Notes under the pieces: model-generated | Told to the model about the DNA's origin: nothing | Databases searched by the model: none | What the model saw: only the letters and a program-made list of their open reading frames with translations | Part shown: positions 30,601 to 63,976 of the stretch, piece by piece | Position numbering within the stretch: the first letter of the stretch is position 1 | How the letters are laid out: each line of letters begins with the position of its first letter | Made by a program: the position numbers and the translations under genes | DNA from: Gekko japonicus | Lineage: Eukaryota | Length of the DNA: 64,000 nt | Direction of reading: 5' to 3' | Assembly: GCF_001447785.1 (NCBI RefSeq) | Contig: NW_015164664.1 | Span: 124,001 to 188,000, forward strand

Positions 30601-31305
30601 AAGAGGCAGGGAAAGGAGGGGGAAGAAACACTGCTGGCAAAAGGCCTGGAAGTAGCCACATCTGCAAGTAGTTCACAGCGCAATACCTAGAGTAACTCTC
30701 AGTAACACTGCCGGGAAAGGAAAGAGGAAGGGGGAAAGACGTAGAAAGTCTTCGCTCTGCTGTGGTCCAGTGACGACGGATCAGGAAGTCCTCCGTTCGA
30801 ATCTCGCCTTTTAACTGAGCGGCCTTGGGCAACTTTCACAAGCCTGATGTAAGGAGTGCAATTAATTCGTGCCATTAATTCTCTCCTCTCCCCGCCCCCG
30901 CCTTTCGGGTCTCACCTTCCACCCGGCTGAGCTGTTGCTGTCTCCCTTGTCGCGGAAATAAGGCACGGAACGGACCATCCACTCGTAGATCTGTGCCAGG
31001 GTGAGCCGCTTATCCGGGGCGCTCTCGATGGCCTGGCTGATTAAGTCGGCGTACGACTGGCTACCCCAAGCATTGCGACGCGCCCCGCCGCTGCTCCCGC
31101 CGCCGCCGCTCTTCTCGGGGCTCCCTAGCCCGCTCCCGGATCCTACCCCCCCGCCTGGTTCTGGGTCGGGTTCCGCCGACGCCCCTGCCAGCTCCGGCCG
31201 GGGTAGAGGCCATGTGCAAGAACGTGGCCGGCTCTGTGGAGGGAACTCGGGGTCCAAGGCCGCCTCCGCACCCGCCGCCGAGGGGCTCCCAGACGCCTCT
31301 GCCAT
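18652..31305 (-). CDS. FOXO4: Forkhead box protein O4 (537 aa)
   Basis: Exon 1 31305-30916 (MAEAS...RPRSCTWP...[14 protein letters not shown]...[10 protein letters not shown]). Exon 2 19875-18652 ([10 protein letters not shown]...[25 protein letters not shown]...[33 protein letters not shown]...WVPS*). Three AKT motifs. Adjacency to SNX12 supports the O4 paralogue. Confidence 0.93.
22320..22946 (+). mobile_element. Solo LTR (Gypsy-like)
   Basis: TG...CA ends with imperfect inverted termini tgtcatgggc/gcccataaca; 5-bp TSD acagc/acaac; TATA-like ggctataagg; internal gaccc.ggcttggct repeats. Confidence 0.7.
23695..24015 (-). mobile_element. BovB (RTE) LINE 3' fragment
   Basis: ORF 23752-24018 [19 protein letters not shown]...[36 protein letters not shown]; (caa)n tail. 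Confidence 0.9.
25543..25839 (+). mobile_element. tRNA-derived SINE (Squam3-like)
   Basis: A box tggtgtagtggttaa, B box ggtttgattcc, body ctctcagccccacctacctca, (tct)n tail. Confidence 0.8.
26039..26244 (-). mobile_element. hAT-type MITE, family copy 2
   Basis: TIRs caatgttccctctaagct / agcttagagggaacaatg; perfect 8-bp TSD gttccaag. Confidence 0.9.
27514..27788 (+). mobile_element. BovB (RTE) LINE 3' fragment
   Basis: Same sequence family as 23695-24015; (aac)n tail; 11-bp TSD acttgaaatgc. Confidence 0.9.
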
Positions 31306-31980
31306 GGCGCCCCTTCCGCTCTCGCGCTCCCTCAGCGCCGCCACATCACCTCCGTCTCCTCAGGGCCACAAAGCACTCGCTGACTGACTAGCGCGCAGGC
31401 GCTCCGCAGTCCCCCTTCCCCCCCCCCAGGAAGGTATAGCCCAATCCCCCTCAGGCCGTACCGAATGTTCTCCCCTTTCGATTAATGGCACCGTCCGCCT
31501 CGCCTTTCTCCTCCGAGGCTCGACGCCCGGCCTTGGCGCGCGCGCGCGCACTCGCTTTCACCTTCCCCCCCACACCTCGCTCCCGCCTCTTTGCCCGAAC
31601 AAGCTTCGCCAACCAGAGCACCCAGCCGCACGGCAACACTGTTTACCGGACTTCGGGAGATATCTACGCTTGCGCGCTGCGGTGTATCTTGGGAGGCGTA
31701 GTCCCGCGAACGGACTACGTGGAGAAACAGACGCTTGAGAGGACTCGATCTCCCATAGAACAGAGCGCAGCCCAGCTCTAGAAAGAATACCGTGGCAAGC
31801 CGTGCTAGCTGGAAAAACTGCAAGTCCCAGAGAGCAGTAGCTTCCCCTTATTCTTCCTCCGGCCTTAGACATTACATAACCAATCGGCTTGCTTGAAAAC
31901 AAACCTTCCGTGCCGAACTGGGCGACTCGGCTCTTCCACTCTTCGGCTATTGTGGCCCCGAGACGCTACGCCCTCCCCTC
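30750..31980 (-). promoter_or_regulatory. FOXO4 CpG-island promoter and exon 1
   Basis: High CpG density; ZNF143/SBS-like motifs (31690-31702 minus; actgcaagtcccag 31817-31830); forkhead core TGTTTAC 31640-31646; CCAAT near 31879. Confidence 0.75.
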
Positions 31981-36624: not shown

Positions 36625-36967
36625 GGCCCCGGTCACACGGCAAAGTTGCCACGGGAGAGGCACGGAAGGTGGGCGGATTATCCAGGCGCGATCACACCCC
36701 AACATCTGGGAAGTGGAGTGCACCCGTGGCTTACTGCCAACAATGCGCATTTAAAAACTAGTACCTCCAAGGTACTAGTAAACATTTGCCATGTGGTGTG
36801 ATCGCGCCGGCGCGTGGCATTCCCCTCCGGTCCGTTTACCCGCCGGCACCGAGGGAAGGACCTGTGGTGTGCCGCCGGTGCGTCTGATCACGTAATCGTG
36901 GATCAAACTGCGCCGGGGCAATTAGCCACGCCTCCACCCACAATATCCGGCCTTTGTGACCGGGGCC
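36625..36967 (+). mobile_element. PIF/Harbinger-type MITE
   Basis: TIRs ggccccggtcaca / tgtgaccggggcc; TAA TSD on both sides; central palindrome actagtacct-cca-aggtactagt. Confidence 0.85.
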
Positions 36968-37058: not shown

Positions 37059-37346
37059 GAACAGCGTTTGAGTCCAATGGCACCTTTAAGACCAACAAAG
37101 TTTTATTTTAGGTGTAAGCTTTAGTGTGCAAGCAAATTTCCTCAGACATATTGAAACAAAATTTCTTCAAGGCTTACATACAGGAAGATGGGGCTTGAAG
37201 AAATTTTGTTTCACTTTGTCTAAGGAAGTGTGCTTGCACACGAAAAGTTTACACCTTAAATAAAACTCTGTTGGTCTTAAAGGTGCCATTGGACCCAACC
37301 TTTGTTCTGCTACTTCAGACGAACACAGCTACCCACCTGAATCTAT
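37059..37346. mobile_element. Short fold-back Penelope-like element remnant
   Basis: Inverted arms of about 110 bp; same 3' end as the 35058 element; perfect 13-bp TSD cataaaacgagca. Confidence 0.75.
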
Positions 37347-37899: not shown

Positions 37900-38720
37900 T
37901 ATTCCTTCGCCCAATCATTCAGACGCCGAGCAGAAGAAACACCCCCCACTCTCCTACGGGTCACCGAAAAACAAGGCTGCGCACGCGCAGCAAATGTAAC
38001 GCCTTGAGGCGTCTCCGTGGATACGTCCGCCAATTATGCAAGTCGTTTCGAGAATAGCCCTTACCGTACAGAGTTCAGAAGGAAAGTGGCACATGCCCGG
38101 AAACATGGATACCATCCTTTCTTTCCGCAATAGAACGGGCGATAGCGTCGAACGATACACGTTCCGAGCATGAACTGCTTAAACCCCGTGCAGTGGATAA
38201 AACAATCTCGTTTGCTTCATACAGGCAACACTTTTGCTTTATACAGATTGTGGGGCGAAGTGGCCAACTACCCAGGGCCCTGAATTCCGCCTATCGTTAT
38301 GCAGGGCGGAGGCGGCGACGCGCCTTTCCACGCACGTTCCGGGGCGGCGCTATGTATTGCGGCGCTAGGGGAGAAGAGAGTGGCGGTTCCGCTGAGGCGG
38401 TTCTGAGTGTGAGAAAGACCGTCATCGTCCCTCGCAGCGCCCGCTATGTCTGAGGCGGCGGTGGCCGATACGCGGCGCCTCAACTCGAAGCCGCAGGATT
38501 TGACGGACGCCTACGGGCCACCCAGCAACTTCCTAGAGATCGATATCTTCAACCCGCAGACCGTGGGCGTCGGTCGGGCCCGCTACACCAGCTATGAGCT
38601 CCGCATGAGAGTGCGTGAGGGGGGCTGGGGGCGCAGAGGGCGGAGCTACAGGGCGTAAGGGGCGTGGCCTCACTTGCCTTGGCAGGAGGAAGTGGGTTGG
38701 GGTGGAGGGCGTTTCTGCAT
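37900..38720 (+). promoter_or_regulatory. SNX12 CpG-island promoter
   Basis: CpG-rich; GC boxes (gggcgg), ETS-like ccggaa and NRF1-like gcgcacgcgca upstream of ATG 38446. Confidence 0.7.
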
Positions 38721-41700
38721 GTTCTTCCTGGTTGGAAACAACACCTTGCAGTTAGAAAGTTAGCACAACAGGGAGAGTGCTTACCGAACTAGCGTTCTAC
38801 GTTTGGTGACCTTTTTTTTAAGCCTAGTTCCAAAATGTTGCCGTTTGCCTGACCCTCTGAAGTAGTGCAGGCCATTTTACTTTCTCAGTATTTTGCCACT
38901 TCATTCTCACCTTTCCTGCATGTGTGAATGATTTTTAGATTCTCCCTTCATGCCACACACAGATGCCCTAGTATTTAAAAAAGGGGTATGGGGGTAGTTG
39001 CTCTAATGGAGAGGCTTTATAAAGTGTTGCGGCTTGGAGCCTTCCCATATTTCTTACCTTTCCCTATATTTGTGAATGTGTAAGGAGCTCTGCTGGGATC
39101 ATTTATTATCATCTGCCATACTGCTTGTCTCCCATCATTGTACTTGGTGCAGTGTAGATAGGGTTTCCCATATGGCTTTCCATCCCACCATTGACCAGAC
39201 TCACACCTGCTTGGTTTGGCAAAGTGGTTTATCATATACCTTTCATTGGTACACATGACAATTTTAGAGTAGCAAAAGCAAATGGTGCCTTGGCTGAGGT
39301 GTTTCTTGTATATACTGCGGGGGGAGTACATGTATACATGATGGACAGACATTATTCTAGGGCTTAATTATAGCTGAGGATGAAAACTAAGGAGTGTTAA
39401 ACTAAGTTTCTCAGAGAAGAGTTTTGACTTAAAAAAAAACAAAAACAGAGTCTTATCTTCTAAATTCAGGGCCAACAGCTTATCTTGGATAGTCACAAAG
39501 TAGCTTTAAGTCCCCTTAATGTTCTCTCTTGCTATGAGAAGACTGGAATTAGAAATTCTCTTGAGCTTGGCAGAAGAATTCTTTGTTTCCCTCTTCTATA
39601 AAGGAGGAGAATGGACAACTGTACAGTGGGATAGATGCATAGTAGTTCCACAACAATGCTGGCTCAGGGCCTGGTACTGGTCTTGCTCATACTGCTGGTT
39701 GGATAACTGCAGAATGTCTTATGGCGAAGGTTCTTTCCACAAAAAGCCACTCAATCTTTGACCCACAGATTCTGGTTGAGTTTCCAACAGATGTGATAGC
39801 TGTTTGTTTGCTAGAAGTATAAATCTCTCCCTTGTGTGTTCAGGGCTAGGGTACCAAGAATTTAGGGGACAACTGATAAACTTTAAACTTGTGCAGAATA
39901 CGTAATTTGTGTGGAACTCAAGAGGTCCACACACTCTGGCCAGGCATAGTAGTCAGTTGTTTCTAGTAGCCAATGAGACACTGCATTCTGCTTTGTAGAG
40001 GCAAAGTATGTCCCTTCGGTACCTACTGCCCAGCAAATGGACTTTGTAGAGAAAACAGCAGTTGGCCCATGGAGAGCATTTGTGGCAATCACCCTACTCC
40101 CGTCCGAGGTGATCATGATGCAGCCTGGTGCAGTTTTGAAAGAGGCACTTCTGCCTTTCTGTTCCTACAGTATTTTTAAACACTTGTTACTCATGGTGAT
40201 GTATACTGTTTGTTTGTATTTCTATCCTGCCTTTCTACAATGTAACTAGTACTGAAGGCAGGTAACACAATGTGAAAACAGTGTAATAAACCTAATGCCT
40301 ATAAAATAGGTCACAACAAAGCTCACAGTAACCCCAAATAACAAAACAGAGCATCAGAAACTCCAAAAACTTATCCACACCCAGATTATCCTCTGCAGTG
40401 GGGAAAGGGATCTTGACAAGATGCTTAGAGGCAAGGACTTGGGTGAGCAAGCTAGGCTTCTATGAGCAGAGTTCAAGAGTCTGTTTCTTTAGTGATTACA
40501 GTAACTGCCCTGTGCATTAAGGCATGACCTGAACAGAAGATATAAGATAATGGGGGAAGATATAAGATAATGGAGGAAGCCCCTCTGTTACTCTGGCCCA
40601 CGGCTTTTAGAGATTTAAATCGTCCCCCATCACTCTAAATCAGGTCCAGAAAAAGACTGCAAGCCAGTGAAGATGATTAACTTTGGAATTATGTTCCCCA
40701 TAGTGGGCTCTTGTTAATAATTCTGCTGCTATATTCTGTACCAACTGCAATTTCAGAATCCCTTCAAAAAGCAACCCTTTGGAGACTGTGCAAAATAAAT
40801 CTAATCTGGATTTCACAAGGCGTGTATTGTCATATCTGACACACACAAGCTTTTTCTGCTGGTTGCCAAAACTACATTTAAGGCGATAACAGTATCTGTG
40901 GATCCCAGATACTGATAACTTAGCCCTGCTCTTATCCTTTGTAAAACACATAGCCAGAAAGACTTGGAAATTAAATTTTTAATATGTCTGTGTGTTTTGC
41001 TCTTGGTGCCTGCTCTGTGATCCTTTGTGCCAAGGAACACAGTAAATGTGCCACTTGAGTATAGAGCTAAAGGAATCATTTGTAAAGCAGCTGCTGAGTG
41101 ATATGTGTCTTCTTCCAGACAAATCTGCCCATTTTCAAACTGAAAGAGTCCTGTGTGAGACGACGATATAGTGACTTTGAGTGGCTGAAGAATGAGTTGG
41201 AGCGTGACAGTAAGGTGAGTGCGAAGGAGAGAGCATCCACTCTGTGTAGCCCCTGACCTTAACTAGAGTAGATGCCAATGAGTCTCCTCCCATCTGCCAC
41301 AGGAATACTCTTTTCCATCAGTCAAGCTGTACTCTTGAGGAGTTAAGATTCTGCTCTCCTGTTAAGTATTCTTTCTGCTTCCAGATTGTAGTGCCTCCAC
41401 TGCCTGGCAAAGCCTTGAAACGCCAGCTTCCATTCCGAGGAGATGAGGGCATCTTTGAGGAGTCTTTCATAGAAGAAAGAAGACAGGGCTTAGAACAGTT
41501 CATAAACAAGTAAGATTGATTTTGGTATTCATTTTTGAAGGAATAGGTTGGGTGCTAAGTCTCACAGCGCAGCCAACGTGTGCATCATCACTTCTTTGCT
41601 AGTGGGAGTGGCCATGGCAGAGCTGACTATAAATATTTATCTTGTAACCAAAGGGTGTATGTTAATGAGGACTGATGCTGTTTTGTAGAGATTGGCAGAA

Positions 41701-42617: not shown

Positions 42618-42642
42618 NNNNNNNNNNNNNNNNNNNNNNNNN
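42618..42642. other. Assembly gap (25 N)
   Basis: Run of n in the SNX12 3' region. Confidence 1.
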
Positions 42643-44699: not shown

Positions 44700-47300
44700 C
44701 AGGACTTTAAATTTCATTTAGCTGCTTTCATGAAAACCACCTTTGATCTGACTTTCCTAGCTGCTAATGCAAAAAGTGCCACCTTGTTAGAAACAAAGGA
44801 GTCTACATCTGACAGCAAAAATATTAATTTATGTCAGAAAAATTGCATAGTTGATCTGTAAAGAATTTACTTCTGATTTCACAATGCTCCCTCTAAGCTG
44901 TGGAGTCTTGTGAGCAAAAATTCTACTTTGTGAGCTGCTGGCATTAAAGTTGTGAGCAAGCAATTTGGCTACTGCATAAATTGGTTTGCTCTGGAGCCAT
45001 CCTTCTCGAGCTAAGACAAAAATGTGTGAGCCAGAGGCAAAAAACTGTGAGTCAGCTCACACTAACTCAGCTTAGAGGGAACACAGGTTTCTAGTACAAT
45101 GGGCAGACCATAACATAATGAAAAAGATCTTCCACAGAATTTCTGCAAACACAGATTTCCTGTGGAATTTTTAGGTATCGTCTAGTGAGTAGTTCTGTTG
45201 GCATAGCCTGAAAGTGTAACGTTGTAAACACTATTCTAAGATTACATGCAGTAATGTCTGCTGAATATGAATCTCTTAAATGGTCTTTATGGCTTTTACC
45301 ATGGAACAGATTTTGCCTGGACAATTGTGGTCAGTTAAGGCATCCCCATTGTACACCTAGTCCCTGATGGTCAAAGTAAATCGTCTGGGACTGTATAGCA
45401 AAAAATAATATTGTTTAAAAAGTCAGAGTGACTTTTTTCCTTACTTAGTAACAAACAAAAGCTTGTTTTACTAAGTGATTCAGTTTTTGACAGGTGATAT
45501 TTCTTCAATGATTTTAAAACTGCCACATGGGCACGAGCTCTAATTGATGGGATACTAAGTTCTGCCCACAGTAGAGCTGCTGGCGACCGCTTTGGCAGTG
45601 CCAAAATGTGTCTCAGAAAAAGGTTTGGAATTACCTCCAGACTAGTGAGTGAGTGTTCCTTCCAGCCCTTGAGTTCAGTGCCATATAATAGATGGGAGAT
45701 AACTTTGCTGAGGAAGAGTTTAGAGGCCGGATCTATTAGGAAACCTCCCTTGGTGTAGTAGAACCTGATTATCACTCCAATGATCTTAGTTGCTGCGGGT
45801 TTTATGGAGGCCAAATGGGCGTTCCAGTTTAGGGTTTCACTAAAAATTAGGCTTAAATATGTATAGATTTTACACTGTTCTAATGGGGTACCATGTATAC
45901 TCCAAGAGAACTTTTTGGGCCTCTTCCAGAAAACTACTACTTTAGTTTTAGTATAATTGATGGAAAGTTTCTCTTCTGTACAGTAATCCCCCAGGGCATC
46001 AAAATTCCTCTTTAAACCGATTCTGGTTAGGGAGAATAGGACTATATTGTCCGCGTACAATAACATTGAAATTTTCTGTTGGCCTATCATGGGAGAACAA
46101 ATTCAGATAATCTTGGCACAATATCGTTTATATATAAGTTAAAGATTAAAGTGGCCAATATGCAATTCTGTTTAACTCCCTTACCCATCGCAATTTCACT
46201 ACTCAAAGAACCTGAGGTACCCACTCTGATCTTTGTGTATGTATCAGAATGCAACTCTTGTATAAGGGACAATAGTCTTTTATCAATATTGATCTTTTCC
46301 AATTTATCCCAAAGTTGATCTCTGTCAAACGAATCAAAAGCAGTGGCCAAATTGACAGTTTGTATATAGAGCTTTAGTTGGTCCGCTCATAGTTGAATGG
46401 GCCACATAGTACAAAGTTTGACAGTAATCAATTGTCCCACTCCTCCAGTTTTTGCAGAAGATATTTCCCATAGAATTTTGAAGCCGTGTCAAGAAGACTT
46501 ATCGGGCGGTAATTTTTTGGGTTCGTTTTGTCCCTTTTTTATGGATGGGAACTACAATACCAGTTTTCCATCGTACTGGAAATATACCTGAATTATTTAT
46601 CTAAGCAGTTTAGCTAATATAGGGGTCCACCACCTGGGAAATGTTTGTATCAAATATGAAGGAATCAAGTCCTCTCCAGGGGATTTGCCAGAAGCCAAAG
46701 TTGTAATAAAGGTTTCCATTTCGGACTCTTGTCACTGGGGCTCACTTTGATAACAATTACATTTCAGGAGCAGAAGCCCAATCCCGTTTATGCCAGCTTT
46801 AACATAGAAGGGTTGGATTCATAAGCTTTAGAAAAATGCTCAAACCAGATGTTTCCATTTATCTGAGCATCCAAAATTTGAGGTGGTCTTCCTAAACTAG
46901 ATGAAACTAGCTCCCAAAAAACAGGATTCTTTTCTTTCAGAAGCAGCCAAAGCCAATTCGTATTTGGGGTAGGCTTTTAAAAAAATTATTTAAACAGGCT
47001 CTTTTACGGGGATCTGAGAATATTTAGTTGCTGGAGTTTACAGGCCTCCTTACTTTGCCAAGTTAACCTCATTTGTTTAGTTACTCTTTTTTAAATTTCT
47101 GCATTCTTGAGTTGAATCATCCATTCAAAGAAAAAGATGGAAGTTTTAAGGGTCTGTTATTAATAAGCAGTGGTTTAATAACTTGCACAATCTTATCACA
47201 TTGTTGGATAGTATTCTCATCCAATTGGAGTAAAGCTTGTCACCTGTTCTTTAAATCAGGACTGTCCAAAGCTGACACTACTGTTGCCATGCAGTCCTAG
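44700..47300 (-). mobile_element. Degraded non-LTR retrotransposon ORF2 (RT plus C-terminal CCHC; RTE-X-like, clade uncertain)
   Basis: Frameshifted pieces: AFDSFDRDQLW...GVKQNCILATLIFNLYIND (46087-46350), LLYADNIVLFS...INYTKTKVVVF (45371-46090), CVC...EDLFHYVMVCPLY (45091-45324). Confidence 0.85.
44882..45086 (-). mobile_element. hAT-type MITE, family copy 3, nested in the LINE
   Basis: Near-identical to 26039-26244; TSD not clear. Confidence 0.85.
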
Positions 47301-48325: not shown

Positions 48326-48841
48326 GGCCACAGGCACACGGGCAGGAAAATGTGGGGGAGGAGCGTGGCTGTTTGCCCCCGGGGAAAATAATGTGTGGTT
48401 GCGCCAGCAGACCTACCGTGGAGGTCCCGTGGTGGTAGTGGGGGTGCCGCGGCACAAACACCACAATCCTGCGGCGCGGCAAAGAAGCAGCACGGCAAAT
48501 GGGTGTTTTTTTTCTTCCGGACACCAAAGTGTGCACATGCCCCGTTGGGTGCTCATGCGCATCCCATGGACAGTTGGGGGAGGGGGAAACCTTTATACGA
48601 GGGGGCATGGGTGGGCGCCGGAACTACCACCGGAAACGCGATCAGACGCCCACCCTTGCCCCGCGGTTACTGGAAACTAGTACTTCCGAGGTACTAGTTT
48701 TTAACAGCGCATCTTTGGCGGGAAGCCTCGGGTTCGCCACGGGAGCTCTACGCTTTCCAGATGTGGCGGTGAGATCACGCCCGGAAAATCCGCCTATCTT
48801 CCTTCTCTCTAGCGTGCCTAATGCTCCGTGTGACTGCAGCC
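48326..48841. mobile_element. PIF/Harbinger-type MITE, longer relative
   Basis: Imperfect TIRs ggccacaggcacacgg / ccgtgtgactgcagcc; AAA on both flanks; shared palindrome 48676-48698. Confidence 0.65.
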
Positions 48842-49230: not shown

Positions 49231-49490
49231 TGTGGCCTGGTCACACAGGCCGGATATCGCAGGGGAGGCGTGGCTAATTGCCCCGGTGCAGCCGGGGGCA
49301 CACCACCGGTCCTTCCCTCGGCGCTGGCGGGTAAACGAGGGGAATGCCCCACACCGAGCATCAGGAGGCAGCCCATGGCAAACGTTTACTAGTACCTTGG
49401 AGGTACTAGTTTTTCAAGGCGCATTGTGGTGGTAAGCCACGGGTGCGCTCCACTTCCCAGATGTTGGGGTGTGCCCGTGTGACCGGGCGC
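49231..49490 (-). mobile_element. PIF/Harbinger-type MITE, inverted and partly deleted relative of 36625-36967
   Basis: Reverse complement aligns to the 36625 element; palindrome at 49388-49410. Confidence 0.75.
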
Positions 49491-49669
49491 CTCTCTGGCG
49501 CAGTCTTGCAGCTTCCCTCAACTCCTTTATTTCCGTCAACTGTCTGCTCTGCTGAGCAAGTCCGGGCAGCCCGCCCCACCACATTGAAAGCTCCAGAGCT
49601 CCTCCCCACCATAGACAAAAAGAAACTCCAGCTCCTATTGCCTAGAGAAGAAGGAAGGGGAAATTATCA

Positions 49670-49923
49670 AAGGCCCCGGATCAACTGACCTCTCTCCCAA
49701 CCCCGGGCGGAGCGGTCGGCACGTGATCAGCCTTTCGGCCGGCTCCACGATGCCAGTTGGAGAAAAGCTGGAAGAGACGCATTCGAGCCATCTGATAGGT
49801 GGACACTCACCCAATGGAGAGCAGGCGCGGAATGCGAGCGCGAGAGAAAGGCTGTTGCGTCCCGAGCTGACCCAGGGCCTCTGAGGCGCCTGAGGGAGGA
49901 GTAGCTCTACTTTTCTGGCCGTT
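49670..49923 (+). promoter_or_regulatory. CpG-island promoter of the uncharacterised gene
   Basis: GC box 49705-49710, E-box CACGTG 49720-49725, CCAAT 49811-49815, E2F-like ggcgcggaa near 49824. Confidence 0.6.
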
Positions 49924-52900
49924 ATGAGGCGACTAAGCAGGCCGCAGAGCCCCGATTCTCCTCTGGAGCCGCCTCTCCAGTGGCGCCTCAGCCCGGTTCT
50001 TCAGGCAGACACAGGCCAGGCCGTGCGCACGTCTCCTGACTCGGCTACGCCCAGCGTCCTCTACCGCAGCTCCTTTGCCCAGGAGTGCGAGGCCGTGGCC
50101 TTCCAGCTGAGTATTGTTGCGGAGGGGGTTCGCCCCCAATGCCCCATAACCATCCAGGAGGAGACGCTGACCCCGCTGGAGCCGCCCTGCTCTTTCCTAG
50201 ACAGCTTCGACGGCCACTCCCTCCCTCGGCCTCTTCCCGAGCCTGCCTCTGCGAGCGCTGGCCCGCCTGATCCCCTCGGAGCCGTACCATGCGGTGAGCA
50301 GAGCACGGGGCTGACAGGGGTTTCTCTTGGCAGAGGAGCCCAGCTGGCCGCCGCCGCCGCCGCCGCCACCACGTCTCTTGACTCGGGCCTGGCAGGGGTA
50401 TCGTCGTGGCCTGAATTGGAGAAGGCCTCGCCGCCGCCTAGCGAGGCCAACGTCACATACGAGTACAAGGGCTCCGGTAGTTCTGCCAACGCCACTTACA
50501 TCTGCGCCGAGTCCCCCTCGTCGGGGGAGAAGGGGATGCCTGCAGACACACCCTCCGCCCAGCCTGCCCTTGAGGTCTGTAAGCGGAAGCTGCCCTTCGT
50601 CACGTCAACACCATTGATGGCGCCTTCGCTTTCAAAAGAGGCATCCCCTGCAGCTTTGTGTACAGAATGCCCCCGGAAGCGTGCAGCCATTGGGTCAGAC
50701 TCCAAGCAGAAGCCGCCGGCAGACCTGCGGCTGGAGTCTGGGTTCGGGGTCACCTTTGCCATCCTGCCGCCGCCAGCAGTGGGGCTGATCAGGTGCCTCG
50801 TGTCTCCGGCAAGGCTCCCTTTGCCAAGAAAAGTCTGTCCCTTGGTGCCCTTCGAACCCTTAGAGCTCGAGGGGCTCCGGGCATAGGAGGCCTTCCCAAA
50901 GGCACTGGTACCACAAGGAAAATGACACAGACAGCTGGCAGAAATTGCTCACAGAACATTGTTATTCCACCAGGATTAGCTGTGCAGAGCCAGCCTGTTA
51001 CCCAGGTAGGTAGTAGCCAGGAGGCATTGTGGTATCTCCTGCCAGTTTGATTTAGTGCATGGACATGCACAAGCCTTTAAAAAGCCCAAGAGAGTTATTG
51101 TTGTTTCTTCTTCCTTCTAAAAATATGTCCTTTTTCTAAGACAGGTGTCTCTTAAAGATATGCTAGAAGAGGTCCTAATGCAGTGTATCAGTTTGCTTGG
51201 GGAGGGGAGTCCTGGGTTCAAATTCCCATTCACTTGAAGCTCATTGAGTGACCTTTAGACAGTCACTCTCATCCTAACCTGTCAGACAGGGTTGTTAGGG
51301 TACAATGGAAAGGATAGAACCAAGCAGATCTCCCTCAGCATCTTGGATAAACATATTGATGGGTTGATTCCTGAAATGCAGCCTGACCTGCACACACTCT
51401 TAACCACTTCTCTGAGTTGCTGTTATTGAACACACAATGCTTTCTGCTGGATTTTTAATTCCAATATATAGCATTGATTCTGCTAGTAAACATTTTGTAC
51501 ATAGGAACTAGTCTGTGGGGCAGAACCTCTGTGACTGGATCTGTGGCTAATTACCCACAAATGAGAAGTTATAAGGCCTCATTCTGTCTAAATTTATTAT
51601 GATTATGATTAAACTTAAGGTAGGTGACTTTTGAGATGGATTTTCCCCACCAGTGGTAGGCTGATGTAGCTTATTAAAATCTGATGTGTCCACTACTTGC
51701 ACAAGGGGGCCGCCTACTCAGTGTTGCTTGAAGCTCTGCGTAGCTGTTGTGAGAGCTGCTTGATATAGTTTGTGATAAAGCTAGGGTAATTTGTGTTCTT
51801 CAGAGAGAAACTATTCCTGGAGAAACTGTTCTTTTATCTGAGCATCGAAAGAATAGTGATGGTCTCTTTTCTTTGTGAATTTATGAAACATATTTTTTTC
51901 AAAGCTGAGGAGTCCCCTGAGAATGCTGAAACCTGCTTATCTGTGAGAGCCCCTGTTTCCAACCTTATTGATAAACACAGGACCATCACCTTTGCTAATT
52001 AGCAGTGATTTGCAAATAAAGTGCATATAAAGCGGCGTGTGGCAAACCTTAGCTTTAGGATACTTGTGCAGCTCTGTACTAAATAAGGAGCCCACTTCAG
52101 CCCCATTCTCAATCAGAATCTGTCTTCAAACTTTCTGGATGTCAGGAACTGTTCATGTGATTTGATCTCATGGTTTTGAAGCTTAATGGGTTCTAGAGGT
52201 TAGGTCACTGGCTGCCAGAACTGAATTTAAGAATAGTTTGTTAGATATATTTGTCTGCATTGTCAAATCTTAAAAATTTACCCTTGATATCCAGTGATAA
52301 CTAGCTACTGTTCAAAACCATGTTGGCAATTTAAGTAATTTCTCTTTGATGGAAGCCTTTACTTTCCTCTGGATTCATTAGATGTTGTCAGCAATGTCGG
52401 ATGGGAGATACAGAAATATTCCTTTTAATCTACAGGGAAGAGGAAATTGAGATTATTCCTCACAGTATTTCACTGTCACATCTCTGAAAGTGAGCAGAAT
52501 ATATCTTTTTTCTTCCCCTTACAAAGGCCATTGGAAGCTCATGTAATGAGCTGCTACTTGGACAACTGAATTTGAGTGCTCCATTTCTGCACTTCCTTTG
52601 GCACTGAGTGGATGGTATAGTGCCAGTGTGGTGTAATGGTTAAGAGTGCCAGACTAGTATCTGGGAGACCAGGTTTGAATACCTACTCTTGCCATGGAAC
52701 CTCACTGGGTGACTTTGGACCAATCACACTTTCTTAGCCTAACCTACCTCATAAGGTTGTTATGAAGATAAAATGGAGGAGAGGAGATCATTGTAAGCCA
52801 CTTTGGGTCCCCACTGGAAGGGGAACTATTTATCGCTTTATTATGATCTGTTATCAGATACTTAAATGTTCTTAGAACTATTAAATCAATCTAGTGGAGA

Positions 52901-55900
52901 AGTGTTAATGTCTGGGAGCATAAAGAGAATAATGGATTCACATCAAATAAAATTGACTGATCTAATACTTGGGTCTTGTATCATGTAGAAACTCTTATCT
53001 GATGAGATAACCAAGACAGATCTGACAGAACAGCCCTGCAATAAGAAGCCTCCTTCCAAACTTCCTGGTAGATTTGGAGTTCAGGGGTCCTTAGTGTGTC
53101 TGGGTCTGAAGCTCCATGGTACACCTAAAGTTAATAATGCTTCAGGAACAAGGCTTCCAGTTTTTGCAGGTGAGCTGGGTTGGTTTCTGAATGAGCAGAT
53201 GTGAGTAAGAGGGAGTCTGTCTGACAAGAATGGGTTGAAGTGTGTTATTCTGACTGTGAAATGCCTGAGTATTTCCTATTTTTCTTCTGAAGGTTACAAT
53301 TAGGTGACAGTCTGCTGCTCACCAGCTGGCTTATGTTTCTGTTCTGAAGGTCCAGAAACCAAATATTAGCCAGATGACAAAGTGTATGTAGTCAAGGAAC
53401 AGGGGATGTTTAGGAAGGGATTTTGAAGGTGCAGGCTACACTAAGAAACCCATGAACCCAAGGGAGTGGAGGTGAGTGGATCTTTAGAAGACTTCTCTGC
53501 CTTCCTTGACTGGTAGTGGATTCATCACTTCATTATGACCTGCAACATGCTAGTATGGGGCTCAGTAAATCCCAGGAGCCATTTTCAGTAGTGACTCCAT
53601 TGTAGTGTATCTTGGAGATCCTTGGAGAAATACAAAGCATATTTATAATTTCAGATCGGAATTTTTTGTAGCATGACGTAAAAATACACATGCATGAAGT
53701 TCTTTTCATTGCTTGTTTATATGTTAACATTACACCATTCAGTGGCAGTAAATCAAATAATTTCTTAGCCAGTTGCTTTCAGTATTAAATTAAATTAAGC
53801 TTTTTAAAGAATTAATAAAATTGGAGAGTTTAGATTAGATTAGAGGTTAGCTTTTTGCTGTCATGTTGACCACCAGGATTAGCTCATATTTACTTATGCA
53901 CTATGATACTTCTGTCAGAGCTTTAATAAAATTAGAAGAATTTAAAAGGAGTTTAGGTTAGGTTTTGTGGTAGCAATAATTAGAAAATATGGTCATTAAA
54001 ATACAAAACTCTGTTGAAAAATTAGTTTGGTTTGTAATTTTTTGGGGCTGGCTCCTAAAACTGCAGACAATTTGTGAAGGCCAGTGCTAGTATTAAAGTG
54101 GTTGTATTCATTGGCAAAATTAGAGTGCCAGCATGGTGTAATGGTTAGAATGGACTAGTATGTGTGTTCAAATCTCCACTCTGCCATGGAAGCTTTCTGG
54201 GTGAGTTCAAGCCAATCACATACTCTCATCCTAACTTACCTCACTGGGTTATTGTGAGGATAAAATGGAGGAAAGGCTGATGATGGGAGCTTCTTTGTGT
54301 CCCCCTCCTCTAACTTAAGGAGCTCTTTCATTGGAAGAAGGCTTCTTAGGCTGGAGGAAGGCATCAAACTTTCCTCAGTGGTGTGGTAAAATATATGCCA
54401 CCATGTGTAGTGGTCAGAACACTCTGCTTTATCAAGCCATATTTGTACAGAGATCAAGTGGAACTCTAGGATTCTGTTGGCATTCTTCTTATTGTGTGGC
54501 ATTCAGGCAACATGGTAACCGCTAAGACTTCAAGTCAAAAGCGTCCCTGGGATAAACCATCTGACAAAGCTACTGCATCCCCCCTGAAGCAACCATTTCC
54601 TAAACGTTCCCGTCTGTGCAAAAGTAAGTTGTAAAGAACACTTTACCTCAGCAGTAAGTATTAATTTGGGGTGGGGTGAGAACTTTCCTCTGCCAGGCTA
54701 GGGATGCTGGGAATGCCTAGTGAAACTGTTAACTGTTACTATGTCAGGTTGCTGTGTGCACTGAAATGCAGGTTCTTCTCAAGCACAGTATTATCCAGCC
54801 ATAGCCACAACAGATGTGCTGTCCTCTTCTTTTGGGGTACAGCAGTTTTTAGAGTCTTCTACCATTGAATGGAATACATGCTCGCCTACAGAGTTCTGAG
54901 TGGCTGCTGTCAAGATACTATGTATTAGGTGTAGGGGTGGTTGATTGCCAGTAGAGGGCAGCAGCAGACCAAAGAAGCTTTTCTTCCTTCCCACAAGCAG
55001 TCTTCTGAAGTAGGAGAGATTGAGGTATCTAGACACTGCAGGAGAGAGGGGGGAAAGTGCTAAGCCTTCCCCAGAATAGTAGGTGGTGAGTAGGAGTGTG
55101 CATTCAGCTAAATCCGAGCTGAAAAAATACCCCCAAAAACCTTATTGGTATTTTTTGGGTATTGATTCAGCCAAATATAGATTTTGGATATAATTCAAAA
55201 ATCTGAAATGGCCAAGCCCCCAAAATCCCAAAAATATTTGGGACCGCCAGATAGACTAACTTAAAGGGCGTTCAAAGGGATCAGAGTCCCTTTAAATGTC
55301 TTCTCCAGGCCATGCAGCTCCATGGTTTGGAGAGCTCTGAAGGTGTGGAAAGGACAAGCCTGTTAATTCTCCAAGTCACTGAGTCACGTGGCTTGGAGAA
55401 GACATTTAAAGGGACCGTAATCCCTTTAAATGCCTTTTTTTCCTCACTGAAATCAATGGAGGATGGGGGCACCTTCTTTTGGGGCCCATAGATTTGGACT
55501 CCTGGTCCAAACTTTTTAAACTTGAGGGGGGCGGTTTGAGAAGAGGCACCAGCAGCTATGCTGCAAATTTGGTGCCTCTACCTCAAAAAACAGCCTGCCC
55601 TAGATACTTCCCCATAGGTATAATGGAGCCGAATAATTCAGGTTTCCCAAATATTCCCTGAATCTGAATACTATACCAGTACTGAGATTTGGGAATATGA
55701 GGAAATACCAATATTTTTTGGGTTCCGTATACCCAAAAACCACCACCCCCCCCAAAAAAATATTGCTTCTTGCACACCGCTAGTGGTGAATATATATTAG
55801 ATTGGAGGTCCATGGAGCAACACTCTTGAGGCTGCAGTTTGCAGGTCAACAAAGATGGAAAACAACTTGTCTCTCATATTCAGATCAGAAAGAGAAGCCC

Positions 55901-57373
55901 ACATGTAGCAATATGGCTGTTGCACAAGCTCCAAGTGCTACTCTGGAGAAAGAGCTCACTGCACCTTGCTCACAGGTAAGGCCATCAAGGTGGATAGATT
56001 TAAATTACCCAAGGGTGTCTCTGTGTGTGTGTTTATAAAGTTTCTAGCATCTAATTTTTGTTTTGGCTCTCTGTACTTACGTAAACTAAACATCAATTAG
56101 TTGAGAGTCCAGAACTTCCAGAAACAAGGGATGGTGCATAGGTGAAGGTTCTGTCAGATTCAGACCATTGGTGTACATAGCCCAGTATTGCTTTTTGTGG
56201 CTGGCCACAGCAGCTCTCCAGGCAATCTTGGAGCAGAGAAGGATCTTTCCCAACACCCAGCCTCAGATCCTTAAACTGAAGATAATATGCATTGAACCTG
56301 GGACCTTTTGCTTGCAAAATATTTAAGTGGGGAAAGTCATGTGCTGTGATATCTAACATGGCATCTGTTTTTCAATTTTAGTGTAAATGGCTGGCTGAAG
56401 AGAATCAGCAGTTGAAGAGCATGTTAGAAACATGTCAAAAGACTCTTGCTTTCCTAGAAAGAAAGGTAATTTCCTTGGGATCCCTACATTTAGAGTCCGG
56501 GTGGCTTCTATATGCAGAGTGTGTAATGCAGTGCAGTCTGTTGCAGGGAGCTGCTAGCCTCAGCAGAATTGCTTTCAGAATTCAAACCACTAGCAGAGTG
56601 GCGCTTATTAACAGGTCAGGTAAAAGGATTGCAGTTGTCTGTTCACATGACCTTGTTATCCAGATTGGTGCAATGTGCAACGTGTCCTCTACATGTGTAG
56701 AGTCCAGACCCTGCCACTGGGGAAGTTGCTTTGGGACCAAGCAGTCTATTATATACCCAAGCCCTGATCTGATACCCATTTCAATTTGGGAAGGAAAAAC
56801 AAAACACAGAAAATCACAAAAGAAATCATCTTTATTCCCCTAACCAGATAAAAGGCTAGAAAGATTAAATGCAAGGGAAAGCGAAAACATAGACCAAAAT
56901 TGAAATGCGGTGACACAGTGCTGCCCTGGGTTCGGTGGACAGTGGGATGATTTAGGTGGAGTGATAGTTACTGGGATAGTGGACCAGCTAGAGAGAATCT
57001 GAACAAGGCTGACCAGCTTGAGTGCATTTCACTGGGCTTGGGATTCAGTTGCTGGAGAAGGCTGTAGAGTGAGATGTGTTATACAGCAAACTTGAGACAA
57101 TGACTCTGTGGTATGAAGGAACTTATGGAGGCTTGAAGAGAGAGACCTTTAACCAATTTGCTACCGCGGGGGGGGGGGGGGGATATATATGTGCCTTTCT
57201 TCCAAATGTTAGTTATGAACTATTCTTGATAGAATTTTAATTGTTAGAATTTTTTTATATAACATGTACCAGTATTAATAAATTCTAAATTGTCCTGTTC
57301 TGCCTTTTCCCATCTCTCTTAGCAAACTGTGGTAGAAAATGAAAACTGTCCCCCTCAGACAGAAGCTACATGA
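49924..57373 (+). CDS. Uncharacterised S/P-rich protein with C-terminal CxxC plus coiled coil (about 535 aa if the exon-1 frameshift is repaired)
   Basis: Exon 1 49924-51005 (donor CAG|gtaggt; needs a -1 frame change between 50583 and 50886), then phase-consistent open exons 52989-53169, 54507-54623, 55884-55975, 56382-56465, 57323-57373 (TGA); AATAAA 57501-57506. Confidence 0.7.
52619..52820 (+). mobile_element. tRNA-derived SINE (Squam/MIR-like)
   Basis: gtggtgtaatggttaagagtg...ggtttgaatacc...cctaacctacctca; related copies at about 51175-51350, 54124-54300 and 62131-62330. Confidence 0.7.
55091..55782. mobile_element. Non-autonomous hAT-like DNA transposon
   Basis: TIRs taggagtgtgca / tgcacaccgcta; 8-bp TSD gtggtgag/gtggtgaa. 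Confidence 0.65.
56135..56325 (-). mobile_element. tRNA-headed SINE with a CR1-like tail
   Basis: Minus-strand B box (ttgaacctggga on plus) and tail similar to the 2365 element; a related copy lies at about 62460-62640. Confidence 0.55.
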
Positions 57374-57500
57374 AGATGCTTCAGAGAATTCAGTTCCACT
57401 GTCAAACTCTAGAAATGAGGCTCATTAAACGAAGAAAACTGATGGATATTTGCTAATGGACAGAGCCCATCTGGCTATATATTAAGAGTGCAATAAGTTT

Positions 57501-57506
57501 AATAAA
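57501..57506 (+). terminator. Polyadenylation signal of the uncharacterised gene
   Basis: AATAAA 128 nt after the stop, with a GT-rich tract downstream. Confidence 0.6.
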
Positions 57507-60500
57507 ATGAAATCTTGCTGTAAAATAAGTATAACCCCTGTAAACCAGGGACTGTGTTTTATTGCGTGTAAACTGCTTGGAGTGGTTAGAGAGGCATGGC
57601 AGAAGTTACTTTAACAGGTGGACATGGCTTTCATCTACCTGTTTCAAAGTCACTGCTTGCTGAGTTTTGTTGGCCCCCTACACCTTATCTATTGGTTCTA
57701 ATGCTTGGTTTACCTGGCCATACCAGAGTGTTCTTCTGTAAATTCAACTTTGCTCTCCTCCTCTCCCAATTTCAGTGGCTTGTTGTGGAAAAGAAAAAGA
57801 CTGTGGCGAATGCTTGTTCATCTGCCTGTCTGTTTCCTGCAGTCTCCAGGCTGGGCTCTGGAAGATGTCCAGTGGATGGAGCTTAAACCTTGTTAAAATC
57901 ATGGCAGTGCTGATTCTCAGGATGTAACACAATTACTGTTCTGAAACTGTCTCCCTCGGGGCAAATTGCTGGAGTCCAGATCTACAGACAGCAAAGCCAC
58001 ATTTCTAGAGAAAACCCAGGCCCTTTTCATCTGTTCTTTTATTAGGCTTGGTTTCTTACATTTCAGCAGCTGTACAAAGGTCAGCAAACATGCCTCTTTC
58101 CTGTGCCATTTCATAGGCTAGAGCAATCTATGGGCTTGGGCACTATTTTCTTCAAAGAAGACAACTGCTATATACCTTTCTACCCTCTTCGTAGAACTCC
58201 CTCACTGCAACTGTGCTTTGGAATGTATACCAAAGTACGTAACTTCAAATTAGTGGCGTTGACCAGACTGGTCATTCTAAACGGCAGGAAGATCTTTAGG
58301 CACGAAGAAGGGTTGGCCTCCTCATATCCTAATAAAAATCCAAAATCTCCTATCTGCAGTGGAGTAGATTACAGTATTCTGGCCTTCCAACTCACTTCCT
58401 CCATTAGAGTGATCTGCCAACTGGCCCTCTTTAGGGCTTGGGGAATAAGTTACGTTAGTGGCTCCTCTTACTGCCTGCAAAGTTAAGGCAAGAAGCCAAG
58501 GGACTGCATCCTAATGTTGTTTTACAGAAAGGAAAGTATTACATGCCATGTTCAAGTAATATGGAATTGTTTTCTTCTGCTGTGAAGCTCTTATATTTAG
58601 TGTTAAAGATCCAGGACCCCCATATAACGCCAGCTGATAGTATGGGACTTAGTAAACTGTAAACATGACAGGAAATCACATGATACAGTGCTGTGGTTCT
58701 GAGACAGGAAAAGAAGGAGCTAGACTTTACTGGTGTCCAGGCCAAGATTGTGCAAAAGACCCAGGGTCAAGAACTGCAAACCCGAGCAGTAGTGTAATGG
58801 TCAGTCATGGAGGAATCTTCTCTACTGAGTGACACCATCTTGCTGTCCACCTGTTTCTACCCCTTAACCTTGCATGCTAGGAGCATATCCTTTAAAATTA
58901 GTGGATCTGTAGGGGTTTGTCACCCGGTTGGTGGTTGTCCGCAACCCACCTCATGGTCCCAAACAATGGGTTGAAGATCATTGTTTTATAGACACTCAAA
59001 TACAATTACAAATCTAATCAGTCTAATCCCATGAGTTTTACCATATTACTTCCTCCCCTATTCCATGTATTTCTTTTATTTTGGAGCTGCCCTTTCCCCT
59101 GTAAATTTGTATTATCTGGGCACTTAAAATATATAAAGGTTTCCGATTAGACTTTTGCTTTTGAAAATTTAAGACTTAATGGTCTAGGCTGGAGTAAAAT
59201 TAACAGGCCTGGATAAGTTTCTGTACTATACAATTTGGCACTGAATCAGGTTTTCTATAGGACTGTTTGAATGCCTGATTTTGTGCATGAAAAGCAGAAG
59301 AGTCATCGCTGACCTTTCTTTGGAGAGTCCTGGATTCTTCTCTGTCAAAACATAGTGACTTATCTTATGAAGGAAAACTATCCTGTGCACTGAATACAGG
59401 AAAAACGAGGGAATGGTTTGTATGTATGCAGCATCAGTAGAATTTCACTTTACTCTCTTCTGCACAAGTGTTATATACCTAATTATTATTCTCCAGAATA
59501 AAGTATACAAACGATCCACCTTGAATGTATGTAATTTGTTCTTCCCATAATGGGTGGGGGCAGAAAGAACTATTTTTGTTAACTGCAATTATGGGAACTA
59601 TTGAAAATTAGAATCACTGCCCATAGGCACTGCAGTAAAACCTGAGTTTACTGCATCTTATTTATAACCTAGGATGTATAATCCCCTGTCTTTAAAAGCA
59701 CCCTCCCCAGACTGGAGCCAGTAGCTTTTTATTAGCTGATTTGCACACTGTCTTTGTCAGTACTGATTGACAGCAGATAAGGATCTGGGAACAATTCTGC
59801 ACACACTGTTCCTTTAAAGGGTAGGGTGGCCTGTATGTAACTAAGTGCCTGGGCGCAGAATTCCACTGCCATGGCAAAGTTTAAGTGGCTGAGGGAGATT
59901 TCCTAATTCATTTTCATCTTGTAGCCGCTTCTCTTCAGCCAAAGATGACACTGTCATGAAAGGCAGCCACTGATGGGTTGTAATTAGGAGTAAGAATGTT
60001 GAATGCACTAGACAGCCACCTTCAAGGCTCTGCAGATTAGCAACATCACGAGCCTGCATAGCTCCCACTATTAAGGTGGTCTAGATACTGTGCACCACAG
60101 AAGTATGCAGTGTTGCAACTACACAGGAACGAAAATGGTGCATGCTTTTACAGGAACATTTCTTAAGCCTTCGTTGTGTTCAGGAAGTCCTCCTGTAACA
60201 GAATACACCTGCCTAAAAAAAGGAACCATCTGACCCAGATTGCTGACACAGCACAGATACCAAGCGGTTCATGGGCATGCATCCAGCTGCCCCACAGATC
60301 TACATTAAGACAAACAGAGCCATGAACTCAGAGCTGTCTCCCCTCCTGAAATCACACCACACATGTCCAAGCACTTGGGTAGAATTCTGTATTGAGAATC
60401 TCTAAATTAAAAAAAAAATAATCAAAAACAGACAAGTTCCTAGGTTTTAAGGCTGAAAATAAGCCTGAAAGCATGAGACAGATACATGGTAAAGTCAAGA

Positions 60501-61621: not shown

Positions 61622-63976
61622 TCAGATAGCTGTATCTGGACTCGGGTCAGAGCCAGCAGAATTCAGAGGCTTGTTTGTTGTTAACTGTCGAGTAGTCTGT
61701 GCTTCTATGCTGTGCCGGATCCCGTAACCGAAGTAGATGGCAAAGCCTGCACAGATTACAAAAACACTTATTTTATATGTTAAAAGTTGCTAGATTAAAT
61801 TATTTGTTTCAAAAGTAAAGCAAATTAATACTATAGCAGTTACATAAACAGGAGAAAAGTTACAAAAATTTCTAGAATCAAACAATAGAAAACATACATC
61901 CAAAGGCATCTATTGAATAAGTCCAAGGGCATGAGATCCCATTCCTTAAAACCTTAACCAGCTAAATTGTTGATCATCTATGGAAAGGAGAGTCAAAACT
62001 GGTGACCATAGCTCCAAGTGAGCTACCTGAGTCATGATACCAGGAACTCCAAAAAAGAACGGCTTGTCCATTATTCTACTCATTAAAAATTGATCTCATA
62101 GTTTAGCATGCTAGATTGCTTTACACCAAAGAGTTAATGTGGTATAGTGGTTAGTGTTTCAGACTAGGACTGGGTAGGACCTCAATTCAAATCCCATTTA
62201 GTCATGACACTTGCTGGGTGATCTCAGCTCAGTCGCTGGCTCTATCTCAGCTATCCCCACAGAGCTTGCTGTGATGATAAAAGGGATGGGGGAAGACTTC
62301 CTGGAGCTCCTCAGAGAAAGTGTGATAGACAGCAACTGATGAAAGTCAGTAGTTAAAATTGCAGGATCTAGCTTTCAATAATAGTAACGTTTAACATTAA
62401 TAGTAAGGTTTAACATACTTTAACATGATTAAATGCTAAAGGTAAACCCCCCCAAACCCTAATATTAACTGCCTTCTACCAAGTCAAAGCATCCACTTAG
62501 CTCAGTAGTGTCTCTCCTGACTGGTAGCAGCTTTCATTCAGCTCTTGCTGCACATGTTCCTTTAGCTAAAGGTGGACCCAAGGTTTGAACTAAGGGCCTG
62601 TTGCCATGACTTTTCCTTGACATCAGTCCCTATCTCTTGGCCTGTAACCAGCAAATCTTTTCTACCAAAACTCAGAAAATACCAGCAAGCCCTTGTCTAC
62701 GTATGGGTCACAAGGTTTCCCTGCAAGATCTAATCCAATCTTTCTGTAGGACAAAGGAGAAGGGAGCAAAAGAAAAGACTGCTTCATGTGATCTGATTTT
62801 AACCATGAAGAAATCATTACTAGGTTGGATAGAAGCAAATATAAAAAGATAAAGATTGGCTCAGTGGGAAACCCAGAGCAAAACTGACCCAATTAGTAGC
62901 CACCAGCTCTGTTGACTGGATCTAAATGCTTAGAATAATAATCAAGGTGACTTTGGGAATAATTCTCTGCCATCGGCCTTATTCATTCTTAACAAAAGGG
63001 CAAATGCTTCTCCACATGCACACACAATCACGGGTGGTCCTAGTGATTCTAGGTCCAAGATGGGACTCAAGAACCACTGCCTCTCTGCTGGGGCTAACCC
63101 CTACTGGGGTCAAGCAAGGGGTGTTCCTCACTCATACAAGGTGAGTAGGGAGGTTCTGTCATCACTAGAAGAAAGTGGCAGCAGGAGTCTGCTCTTCCTT
63201 CTTCTCCCTTTTCTGTTGGGAGGCAAGGATGTGGGCAATCAGCACCCTCCCCCAGTGCATGCCCTGGGGCACCTGTCCCAGGTACCCATTGGCTAAGACA
63301 ACCCCTGCCTGCAATAATCTCAACTGGCAACAATGAATTTTATTTCCGAAGTCTACACCTGTCTTGTCTCTAAACCCTCCTCCTATTCACATCTGGAAAT
63401 CTTTCCATGAAAGCCCCTCCTGGTTGCAACCTCCCCTCCACTTGGAGCCTCCATCTGTATCAATCAGAAAGGCTTGCTTCTGACTTCACCTGAATGTGAA
63501 CTTCCCCATCTCTCTCCCAGCTCAGGAAAATCAGAGCTGCATTTCTTGTATTCTCTGCCCCCTGTATCCACAGCTACTCTCAGCATTCCAACTCATGCCG
63601 AGCTTGGATTCTTTCCCCTTTGGATCCTCTTTGGAACATCCTCTGCATTCCTGCGTGGCCGAATGATGTCTCTGGAAACTTCAGGTCTGTTTGCAGGTTC
63701 AAGGTGCAGTTGGATCATCAGATACCTGAGCACTTAAATGCCACCCCAGATAACACTTCCACACAGAAAAGGCTCCCTCTGCTTTCCTTGCTGTCCCACT
63801 GGGAGCCCATAGCCATTACTGGAATCAGTCCTACAGGACAGTGCTTTGAACAAATCAGACTCCTTACCTATAGCCATCCAGACAGCAAAGCGGGCCCAGG
63901 TGCCTGCATCCAGTTGCATCATGAGATAGACATTCACAAAGATACTGAAGAGAGGGAGCACCGGCAGGGCAGGCAC
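61622..63976 (-). CDS. SLC7A3: Cationic amino acid transporter 3 (CAT-3), last two coding exons
   Basis: Exon 63976-63868 [36 protein letters not shown] and exon 61746-61622 [13 protein letters not shown]...DTAI*. This is the SLC7A1-3 C-terminal signature; linkage to SNX12/FOXO4 points to SLC7A3. Candidate polyA (minus) at 59728-59733. Confidence 0.88.

Follow-up and report, generated by a model that had tools for sequence, protein, structure and literature searches.

What is the gene that lies between SNX12 and SLC7A3 in the gecko Gekko japonicus, and to which family does it belong? The question arises from a stretch of 64,000 nucleotides (nt) of the G. japonicus genome (the window), in which an earlier note, made from the letters alone, had read an unrecognised or undescribed gene, perhaps lost in mammals, with the look of a cell-cycle or microtubule plus-end protein. 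Reading of the sequence and a script check place a six-exon gene on the + strand at 49924-57506. We conclude, on sequence evidence, that this locus is almost certainly a real, conserved protein-coding gene. It had nevertheless been recorded before: exons 2-6 and the tail of exon 1 correspond to RefSeq XP_015264489.1 (LOC107108556), a 202-amino-acid (aa) 'uncharacterized protein', and RefSeq and GenBank models are present in nine squamates. Taken together, the results argue for a gene shared across squamates that is real and probably CXorf49-like; a loss in mammals is doubtful, as two language-model searches point to CXorf49/DUF4641.

A six-exon gene matched by an independent gecko model

The independently predicted 538-aa protein of another gecko, Heteronotia binoei, was compared with the window by tblastn. 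Its matches were these six exons only, with E values from 1e-131 to 9e-5 and with alignment edges at the splice sites. Because the H. binoei protein aligns exon for exon at the splice sites, the exon chain is not due to chance. Consistent with this, the script check found AG at every acceptor, GT at every donor and junction phases of 0-1-1-0-0, all as the earlier note had read them. The layout, one large exon and then five short ones, also stood, although exon 1 is not one continuous frame: a break at 50761-50762 had been overlooked. The features of the gene are as follows.

49250..50750, no strand: CpG-rich 5' region, with the presumed promoter plus the greater part of exon 1; CpG observed/expected 0.67-0.78, GC 0.60-0.67 (500-nt windows)
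49924..50760, +: first coding segment of exon 1 (part A), in frame 1, from the conserved ATG (MRRLSRPQS...) to ...GVTFA
50059-50112, +: N-terminal helix motif, in part A
50161-50181, +: ETLTPLE, in part A
50449-50460, +: NVTY, in part A
50578-50598, +: CKRKLPF, in part A
50599-50616, +: VTSTPL, in part A
50761..50762, +: frame break; the two bases 'at' replace about 6 codons of the orthologues (S-N-x-x-x-L), so that some 16 nt are lost on balance
50763..51005, +: second coding segment of exon 1 (part B), in frame 3, PAAASSGAD through SQPVTQ; donor CAG/gtaggt; 72% identity to H. binoei
50884..50886, +: TAG ending the frame-1 open reading frame (ORF), with the exon-1 donor 120 nt further downstream; premature should the frame break be real
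52989..53169, +: exon 2, 181 nt, phase 0 to 1, with AG acceptor and GT donor, matched by tblastn
53055-53066, +: SKLP, in exon 2
53148-53159, +: TRLP, in exon 2
54507..54623, +: exon 3, 117 nt, phase 1 to 1 (symmetric), from splice sites and tblastn
55884..55975, +: exon 4, 92 nt, phase 1 to 0; its end, ...APCSQ, holds the first Cys of a conserved CxxC
56382..56465, +: exon 5, 84 nt, phase 0 to 0; second Cys of the CxxC and a four-heptad leucine zipper
57323..57373, +: coding part of exon 6, 16 codons and TGA (57371-57373); 94% identity to the H. binoei C-terminus
57501..57506, +: polyadenylation signal AATAAA (script check)

The claim of a CpG-island promoter agrees with the CpG-rich 5' end, and past 50750 the CpG observed/expected ratio falls below 0.25 in 500-nt windows. 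In-frame stops lie upstream of the ATG at 49924, and part A shares 69-81% identity with gecko orthologues. At the 3' end the stop and the AATAAA were both found as described; an ATTAAA is also present at 57424. Exon 3 is probably a cassette exon, being symmetric and absent from isoform X2 as modelled in Eublepharis. In intron 5, close upstream of exon 6, a run of about 16 G (57167-57182) marks a place where errors of sequencing or assembly are likely.

A fast-evolving squamate family

The exon translations are exact substrings of XP_015264489.1 at consecutive positions (script check); thus the gene is already annotated, though uncharacterised, and the C-terminus that the earlier note had chained is this RefSeq protein. 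The frame break in exon 1 limits the LOC107108556 model to 202 aa, read from an internal ATG at 50922 in exon 1 part B, and leaves 278 conserved codons at the N-terminal end (49924-50757) without annotation.

A word-indexed search with the exon-1 ORF returned Gekko kuhli at 81% identity, H. binoei (LOC132579327) at 69%, a Logan contig at 67%, Eublepharis at 54% and Sphaerodactylus at 53%. A five-gecko profile was then compared exhaustively with 1.84 billion representative sequences. It matched Paroedura, Sceloporus, Rhineura and Phrynosoma with E values from 4e-74 to 6e-10, the non-gecko matches being Sceloporus undulatus, Phrynosoma platyrhinos and the amphisbaenian Rhineura floridana (E 2.5e-14 to 5.8e-10). 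All ten matches were squamate or gecko-like Logan contigs, and this profile found no mammalian, bird, turtle or other non-squamate protein at E<=1e-3. The search for homologues that the earlier note had suggested thus yielded orthologues in geckos and other squamates and none beyond them at that threshold; the relatives found are six geckos, Sceloporus, Phrynosoma and Rhineura. Identity to Heteronotia drops to 33-36% in the non-gecko squamates, and because it is already this low within squamates, missing matches in other amniotes are not evidence of absence.

Further word-indexed searches, with the nine-sequence alignment and with the Rhineura protein, were dominated by low-complexity words, and only geckos or the query's own cluster appeared among the matches listed. 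Pfam gave no family for the window's exon-1 ORF or for the nine squamate members (E<=1 and E<=10), and a PDB sequence profile search gave no match, so the earlier note's proviso of a clear match to a characterised gene did not materialise. As judged from these comparisons, the gene belongs to a fast-evolving squamate family without characterised relatives.

Besides LOC132579327 in Heteronotia, the squamate models include LOC143822381 in Paroedura, LOC125442905 in Sphaerodactylus and LOC133371486 in Rhineura, the last with four isoforms. The automatic names of some orthologues are misleading ('NACA muscle-specific form-like', 'collagen alpha-2(I)-like', 'IF-2-like'); the Sceloporus undulatus models, for instance, are misnamed collagen-like and IF-2-like. 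The GenBank model of G. kuhli differs from those of other geckos in exon 2, and its last 23 residues match an ORF at window positions 57828-57890 (+), past the AATAAA, rather than exon 6. This terminal exon is probably a misprediction in an ab initio model.

The state of the G. japonicus copy

The ATG ORF at 49924-50886 is in frame 1, while the phase-0 donor of exon 1 (51005/51006) is in frame 3. In tblastn, three orthologues including H. binoei switch from frame 1 to frame 3 within 50757-50766, and with the protein alignment all orthologues make the same passage there. Identity to H. binoei in tblastn is similar on the two sides of the break, 69% before and 72% after. Because both halves are open and equally similar to orthologues, the break is either recent or an assembly fault. 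A mini-intron within exon 1 that would restore the frame was ruled out, the gap being 2 nt.

If the break is real, the G. japonicus allele was recently disrupted or N-terminally truncated; otherwise the assembly is wrong there. We regard a real lesion and an assembly error as evenly balanced. The break lies in a GC-rich GCC repeat, and the assembly is at scaffold level (longest contig 3.2 Mb), so that a local misassembly is plausible there.

We give slightly less than an even chance to the reading in which the 16-nt loss is real and the gene in G. japonicus has recently become a pseudogene or yields no more than a 202-aa product truncated at its N-terminus. The mRNA would then carry a premature stop 120 nt before its first junction and be subject to nonsense-mediated decay. 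The loss at 50761-50762 spans several bases and is not a homopolymer slip, and a RefSeq model was possible only from the internal ATG at 50922, both of which speak for such a lesion. The GCC repeat and the even similarity to orthologues across the break speak against it, as do the downstream exons, which like both halves of exon 1 are free of stops, and the splice sites, which are all kept. This question concerns the state of one copy and is compatible with either family identity considered below.

A disordered protein with conserved short motifs and a C-terminal helix

The full-length relatives are about 400-540 aa long and basic (isoelectric point 8.7-9.9), with S, T, P, G, A and Q making up 50-58% of residues. 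As had been proposed, the protein is largely disordered, at about 90%. AlphaFold2, run on the nine-sequence alignment and numbered here by the 538-aa H. binoei protein, gave a mean predicted local distance difference test score (pLDDT) of 43; residues 50-66 and 493-529 were the sole helical segments. The first is weak and corresponds to a conserved N-terminal motif, LYRSxFAxECEA in the squamate alignment, which is predicted to form a short amphipathic helix. The second is confident (pLDDT 89-95).

This C-terminal helix contains a zipper of four heptads, with C, N, L and L at the a positions and L, L, C and L at the d positions; Asn at an a position is typical of parallel dimeric zippers. A CxxC stands directly before the heptad helix in seven of the nine models, in line with the reading of CSQC followed by a heptad helix. 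That the helix is a dimerising zipper is a fairly well-favoured interpretation. A basic leucine zipper (bZIP) reading was rejected: bZIP_1 and HALZ reached only E of about 0.07, below threshold and in one or two of nine members, and the segment before the zipper is not basic.

Several of the short motifs that the earlier note had singled out are conserved, and others are not. The S-T-P core of TSTP is present at the homologous place in all nine models, and NVTY is likewise kept throughout as [DN]xT[YF], whereas NATY is confined to geckos. From the pair SKLP and TRLP, the latter is kept as [ST][RK]LP in seven of nine models, in basic, S/P-rich surroundings (Paroedura has SRLA); the former occurs in the window only, other geckos having SKLA, and its reading as an SxIP motif was rejected for lack of conservation. 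The same fate befell CKRKLPF as a conserved cyclin dock. The form R/K-x-L-P-F is found only in G. japonicus, G. kuhli and Heteronotia, other geckos have KQELPF or GQLLPI, and the motif table shows no equivalent in Paroedura, Rhineura or iguanians. Also conserved in squamates are E(T/R)LTPLE, a KK/RR-x-L-S basic patch and QKRP, and the order of the motifs is kept across the split between geckos and other squamates.

A probable link to CXorf49

Two language-model searches of the ESM Atlas, with queries only 36% identical to each other, ranked the same three DUF4641/CXorf49 clusters at the top. The H. binoei query scored 0.90, 0.90 and 0.89 with 183, 183 and 175 shared features, and the Rhineura query 0.93, 0.92 and 0.91 with 200, 187 and 193. 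The next named family scored 0.77-0.80, and the tool states that at least 170 shared features are typical of true family members. We take this ranking as a lead, not as a sequence-level test.

The comparison with mammalian CXorf49/CXorf49B adds further likenesses. The lengths are alike (409-578 aa against about 400-540 aa in the gecko family), both families are uncharacterised, and the gecko gene appears to lie in a chromosomal neighbourhood syntenic with Xq13. Human CXorf49 lies at Xq13.1, well under 1 Mb from FOXO4/SNX12 and on the FOXO4 side, and is not known to lie between SNX12 and SLC7A3. The two differ in that no sequence or hidden Markov model match joins them, and in that the human copy is duplicated whereas the gecko gene is single-copy in the window.

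In the literature, human CXorf49 is described as a testis-expressed, uncharacterised gene that is duplicated in X palindrome P8 (PMC8327919). Our literature search met CXorf49 only as an uncharacterised testis or cancer-testis gene or in expression lists, and did not find the term DUF4641.

Several points weigh against a functional, CXorf49-like gene. An ESM Atlas score of 0.9 is reached by 4-10% of shuffled queries. Pfam PF15483 (DUF4641), the one membership test at the level of sequence, matched neither the nine members nor the window's exon-1 ORF at E<=10, and because the gecko profile gave no mammalian protein at its threshold, the CXorf49 link is without alignment support. At 81%, identity between two Gekko species is low enough that near-neutral evolution of a large part of the protein is possible. 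The candidate functional motifs are 3-4 residues long, and their chance occurrence is expected in S/T/P-rich sequence. Finally, the frame break may mean a non-functional copy in G. japonicus. With these points considered, membership of the CXorf49/DUF4641 family is the identity that we favour, with some reservation.

The competing identity is a squamate-restricted orphan without mammalian counterpart, whose likeness to CXorf49 would stem from a shared disordered, basic, S/P/A-rich composition. The restriction of the profile matches to squamates and gecko-like contigs fits an orphan, as does the failure of Pfam DUF4641 to match in any case, and no squamate model has been named 'CXorf49 homolog' by NCBI. 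A composition effect is harder to reconcile with the agreement of two such divergent queries, each of which ranked the three DUF4641 clusters above all others (175-200 shared features) and well ahead of the next family, and with the apparent position of the gene in a block syntenic with human Xq13. Moreover, similarity between gecko and iguanian proteins is already down to E of about 1e-10, and at such a rate of change a failure to reach mammals is expected. We consider an orphan the less likely identity.

The least viable explanation, an accidental series of ORFs and splice-like sites or an RNA that encodes no real protein, could appeal to the low complexity of the protein and to the long ORFs in several frames of the GC-rich exon 1, but another gecko's independent model fits exactly these exons, the motif order is kept in Rhineura and iguanians (E 1e-10 to 1e-14 in the library of 1.84 billion proteins) and Gnomon predicts multiple isoforms in several species; it has next to no probability and is effectively refuted by the profile search and the tblastn mapping.

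A possible role as a dimeric scaffold

From this conserved architecture, we infer that the C-terminal zipper may dimerise a disordered, basic scaffold or adaptor, to which the adjacent CxxC could add a redox or metal contribution. Conserved proline-directed phospho-motifs might recruit partners, for example a Polo-box through phosphorylated S-pT-P. Expression would probably be in the germline and, given a true CXorf49 link, a role there would be likely.

Polo-box-docking scaffolds that combine S-T-P with a C-terminal coiled coil include CENP-U/PBIP1 and MEIKIN. Their likeness to the gecko protein, in which S-T-P is invariant, extends to disorder in the N-terminal part and to a helix or coiled coil at the C-terminus; it is architectural only, and no sequence similarity was detected between them. 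With SxIP-type microtubule plus-end tracking proteins (+TIPs) the gecko family shares the [ST][RK]LP tetrapeptide in a basic, S/P-rich stretch, seen in seven of nine models and in the window. The second candidate of the gecko family, SKLP, lacks such conservation, further +TIP features are absent, and a motif of this length does not allow EB binding to be inferred. Polo or EB docking seems quite improbable, and a mitotic or +TIP role, drawn from short motifs alone, is speculation.

A more far-reaching proposal is that the squamate gene is the single-copy ancestral orthologue of CXorf49, in a family older than the amniote split, and that its conserved elements make up a dimeric, CDK/PLK-regulated germline scaffold. 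We regard this as a long shot.

Genomic neighbourhood

The position between SNX12 and SLC7A3, as given in the earlier note, was upheld by PX-domain exons of SNX12 on one side and an SLC7A3 exon on the other. The gene order in the window is GDPD-domain gene (+), FOXO4 (-), SNX12 (+), six-exon gene (+) and SLC7A3 (-), the last convergent on the six-exon gene. The neighbours are as follows.

1677-4016, +: GDPD-domain gene
18652-31344, -: FOXO4
38413-41510, +: SNX12, with PX-domain exons at 41.1-41.5 kb
63734-63976, -: SLC7A3, last exon

The human order is GDPD2-DLG3-TEX11-SLC7A3-SNX12-FOXO4. Relative to this map the block is rearranged and SLC7A3 is inverted with respect to SNX12; a rearrangement breakpoint is thus implied within the SNX12-SLC7A3 interval itself.

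Repeats and fragments were also observed in this region. Interspersed repeat copies at 48676-48834 and 49236-49473 are inverted relative to one at 36632-36964, at 72-76% identity, and stand 450-1250 nt upstream of the ATG of the six-exon gene; a patch rich in GC and CpG at 48.3-48.9 kb coincides in part with one of them and might not belong to the promoter. Between the SNX12 PX exons and the six-exon gene, a 239-aa ORF at 45371-46090 (-) resembles RVT_1 (E 6e-5, below the Pfam cut-off) and is likely a fragment of a long interspersed nuclear element. Upstream of SNX12, the interval 37068-37298 holds two inverted repeats that are nested, one of 55 nt with 93% complementarity and the other of 52 nt with 88%; these might represent a repeat able to form a hairpin, or an element like a miniature inverted-repeat transposable element. 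The only run of N in the window (42618-42642, 25 N) is downstream of the SNX12 PX-domain exons.

Significance

The practical value of these results lies mainly in annotation: the RefSeq model is truncated to 202 aa, 278 conserved N-terminal codons are missing from it, and orthologues carry wrong names. The gene is probably the squamate member of an uncharacterised but already named family. If the CXorf49 link is false, it is another fast-evolving, disordered, lineage-restricted gene. If the link is true, squamates supply the deep conservation that mammalian sequences alone lack, and the short motifs together with the C-terminal zipper would mark the functional core of an uncharacterised, testis-expressed human family. 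Should the squamate gene also prove to be the ancestral orthologue, its N-terminal helix, S-T-P, [DN]xT[YF], [ST][RK]LP and CxxC-zipper would offer the first testable mechanism for the 'dark' CXorf49 family.

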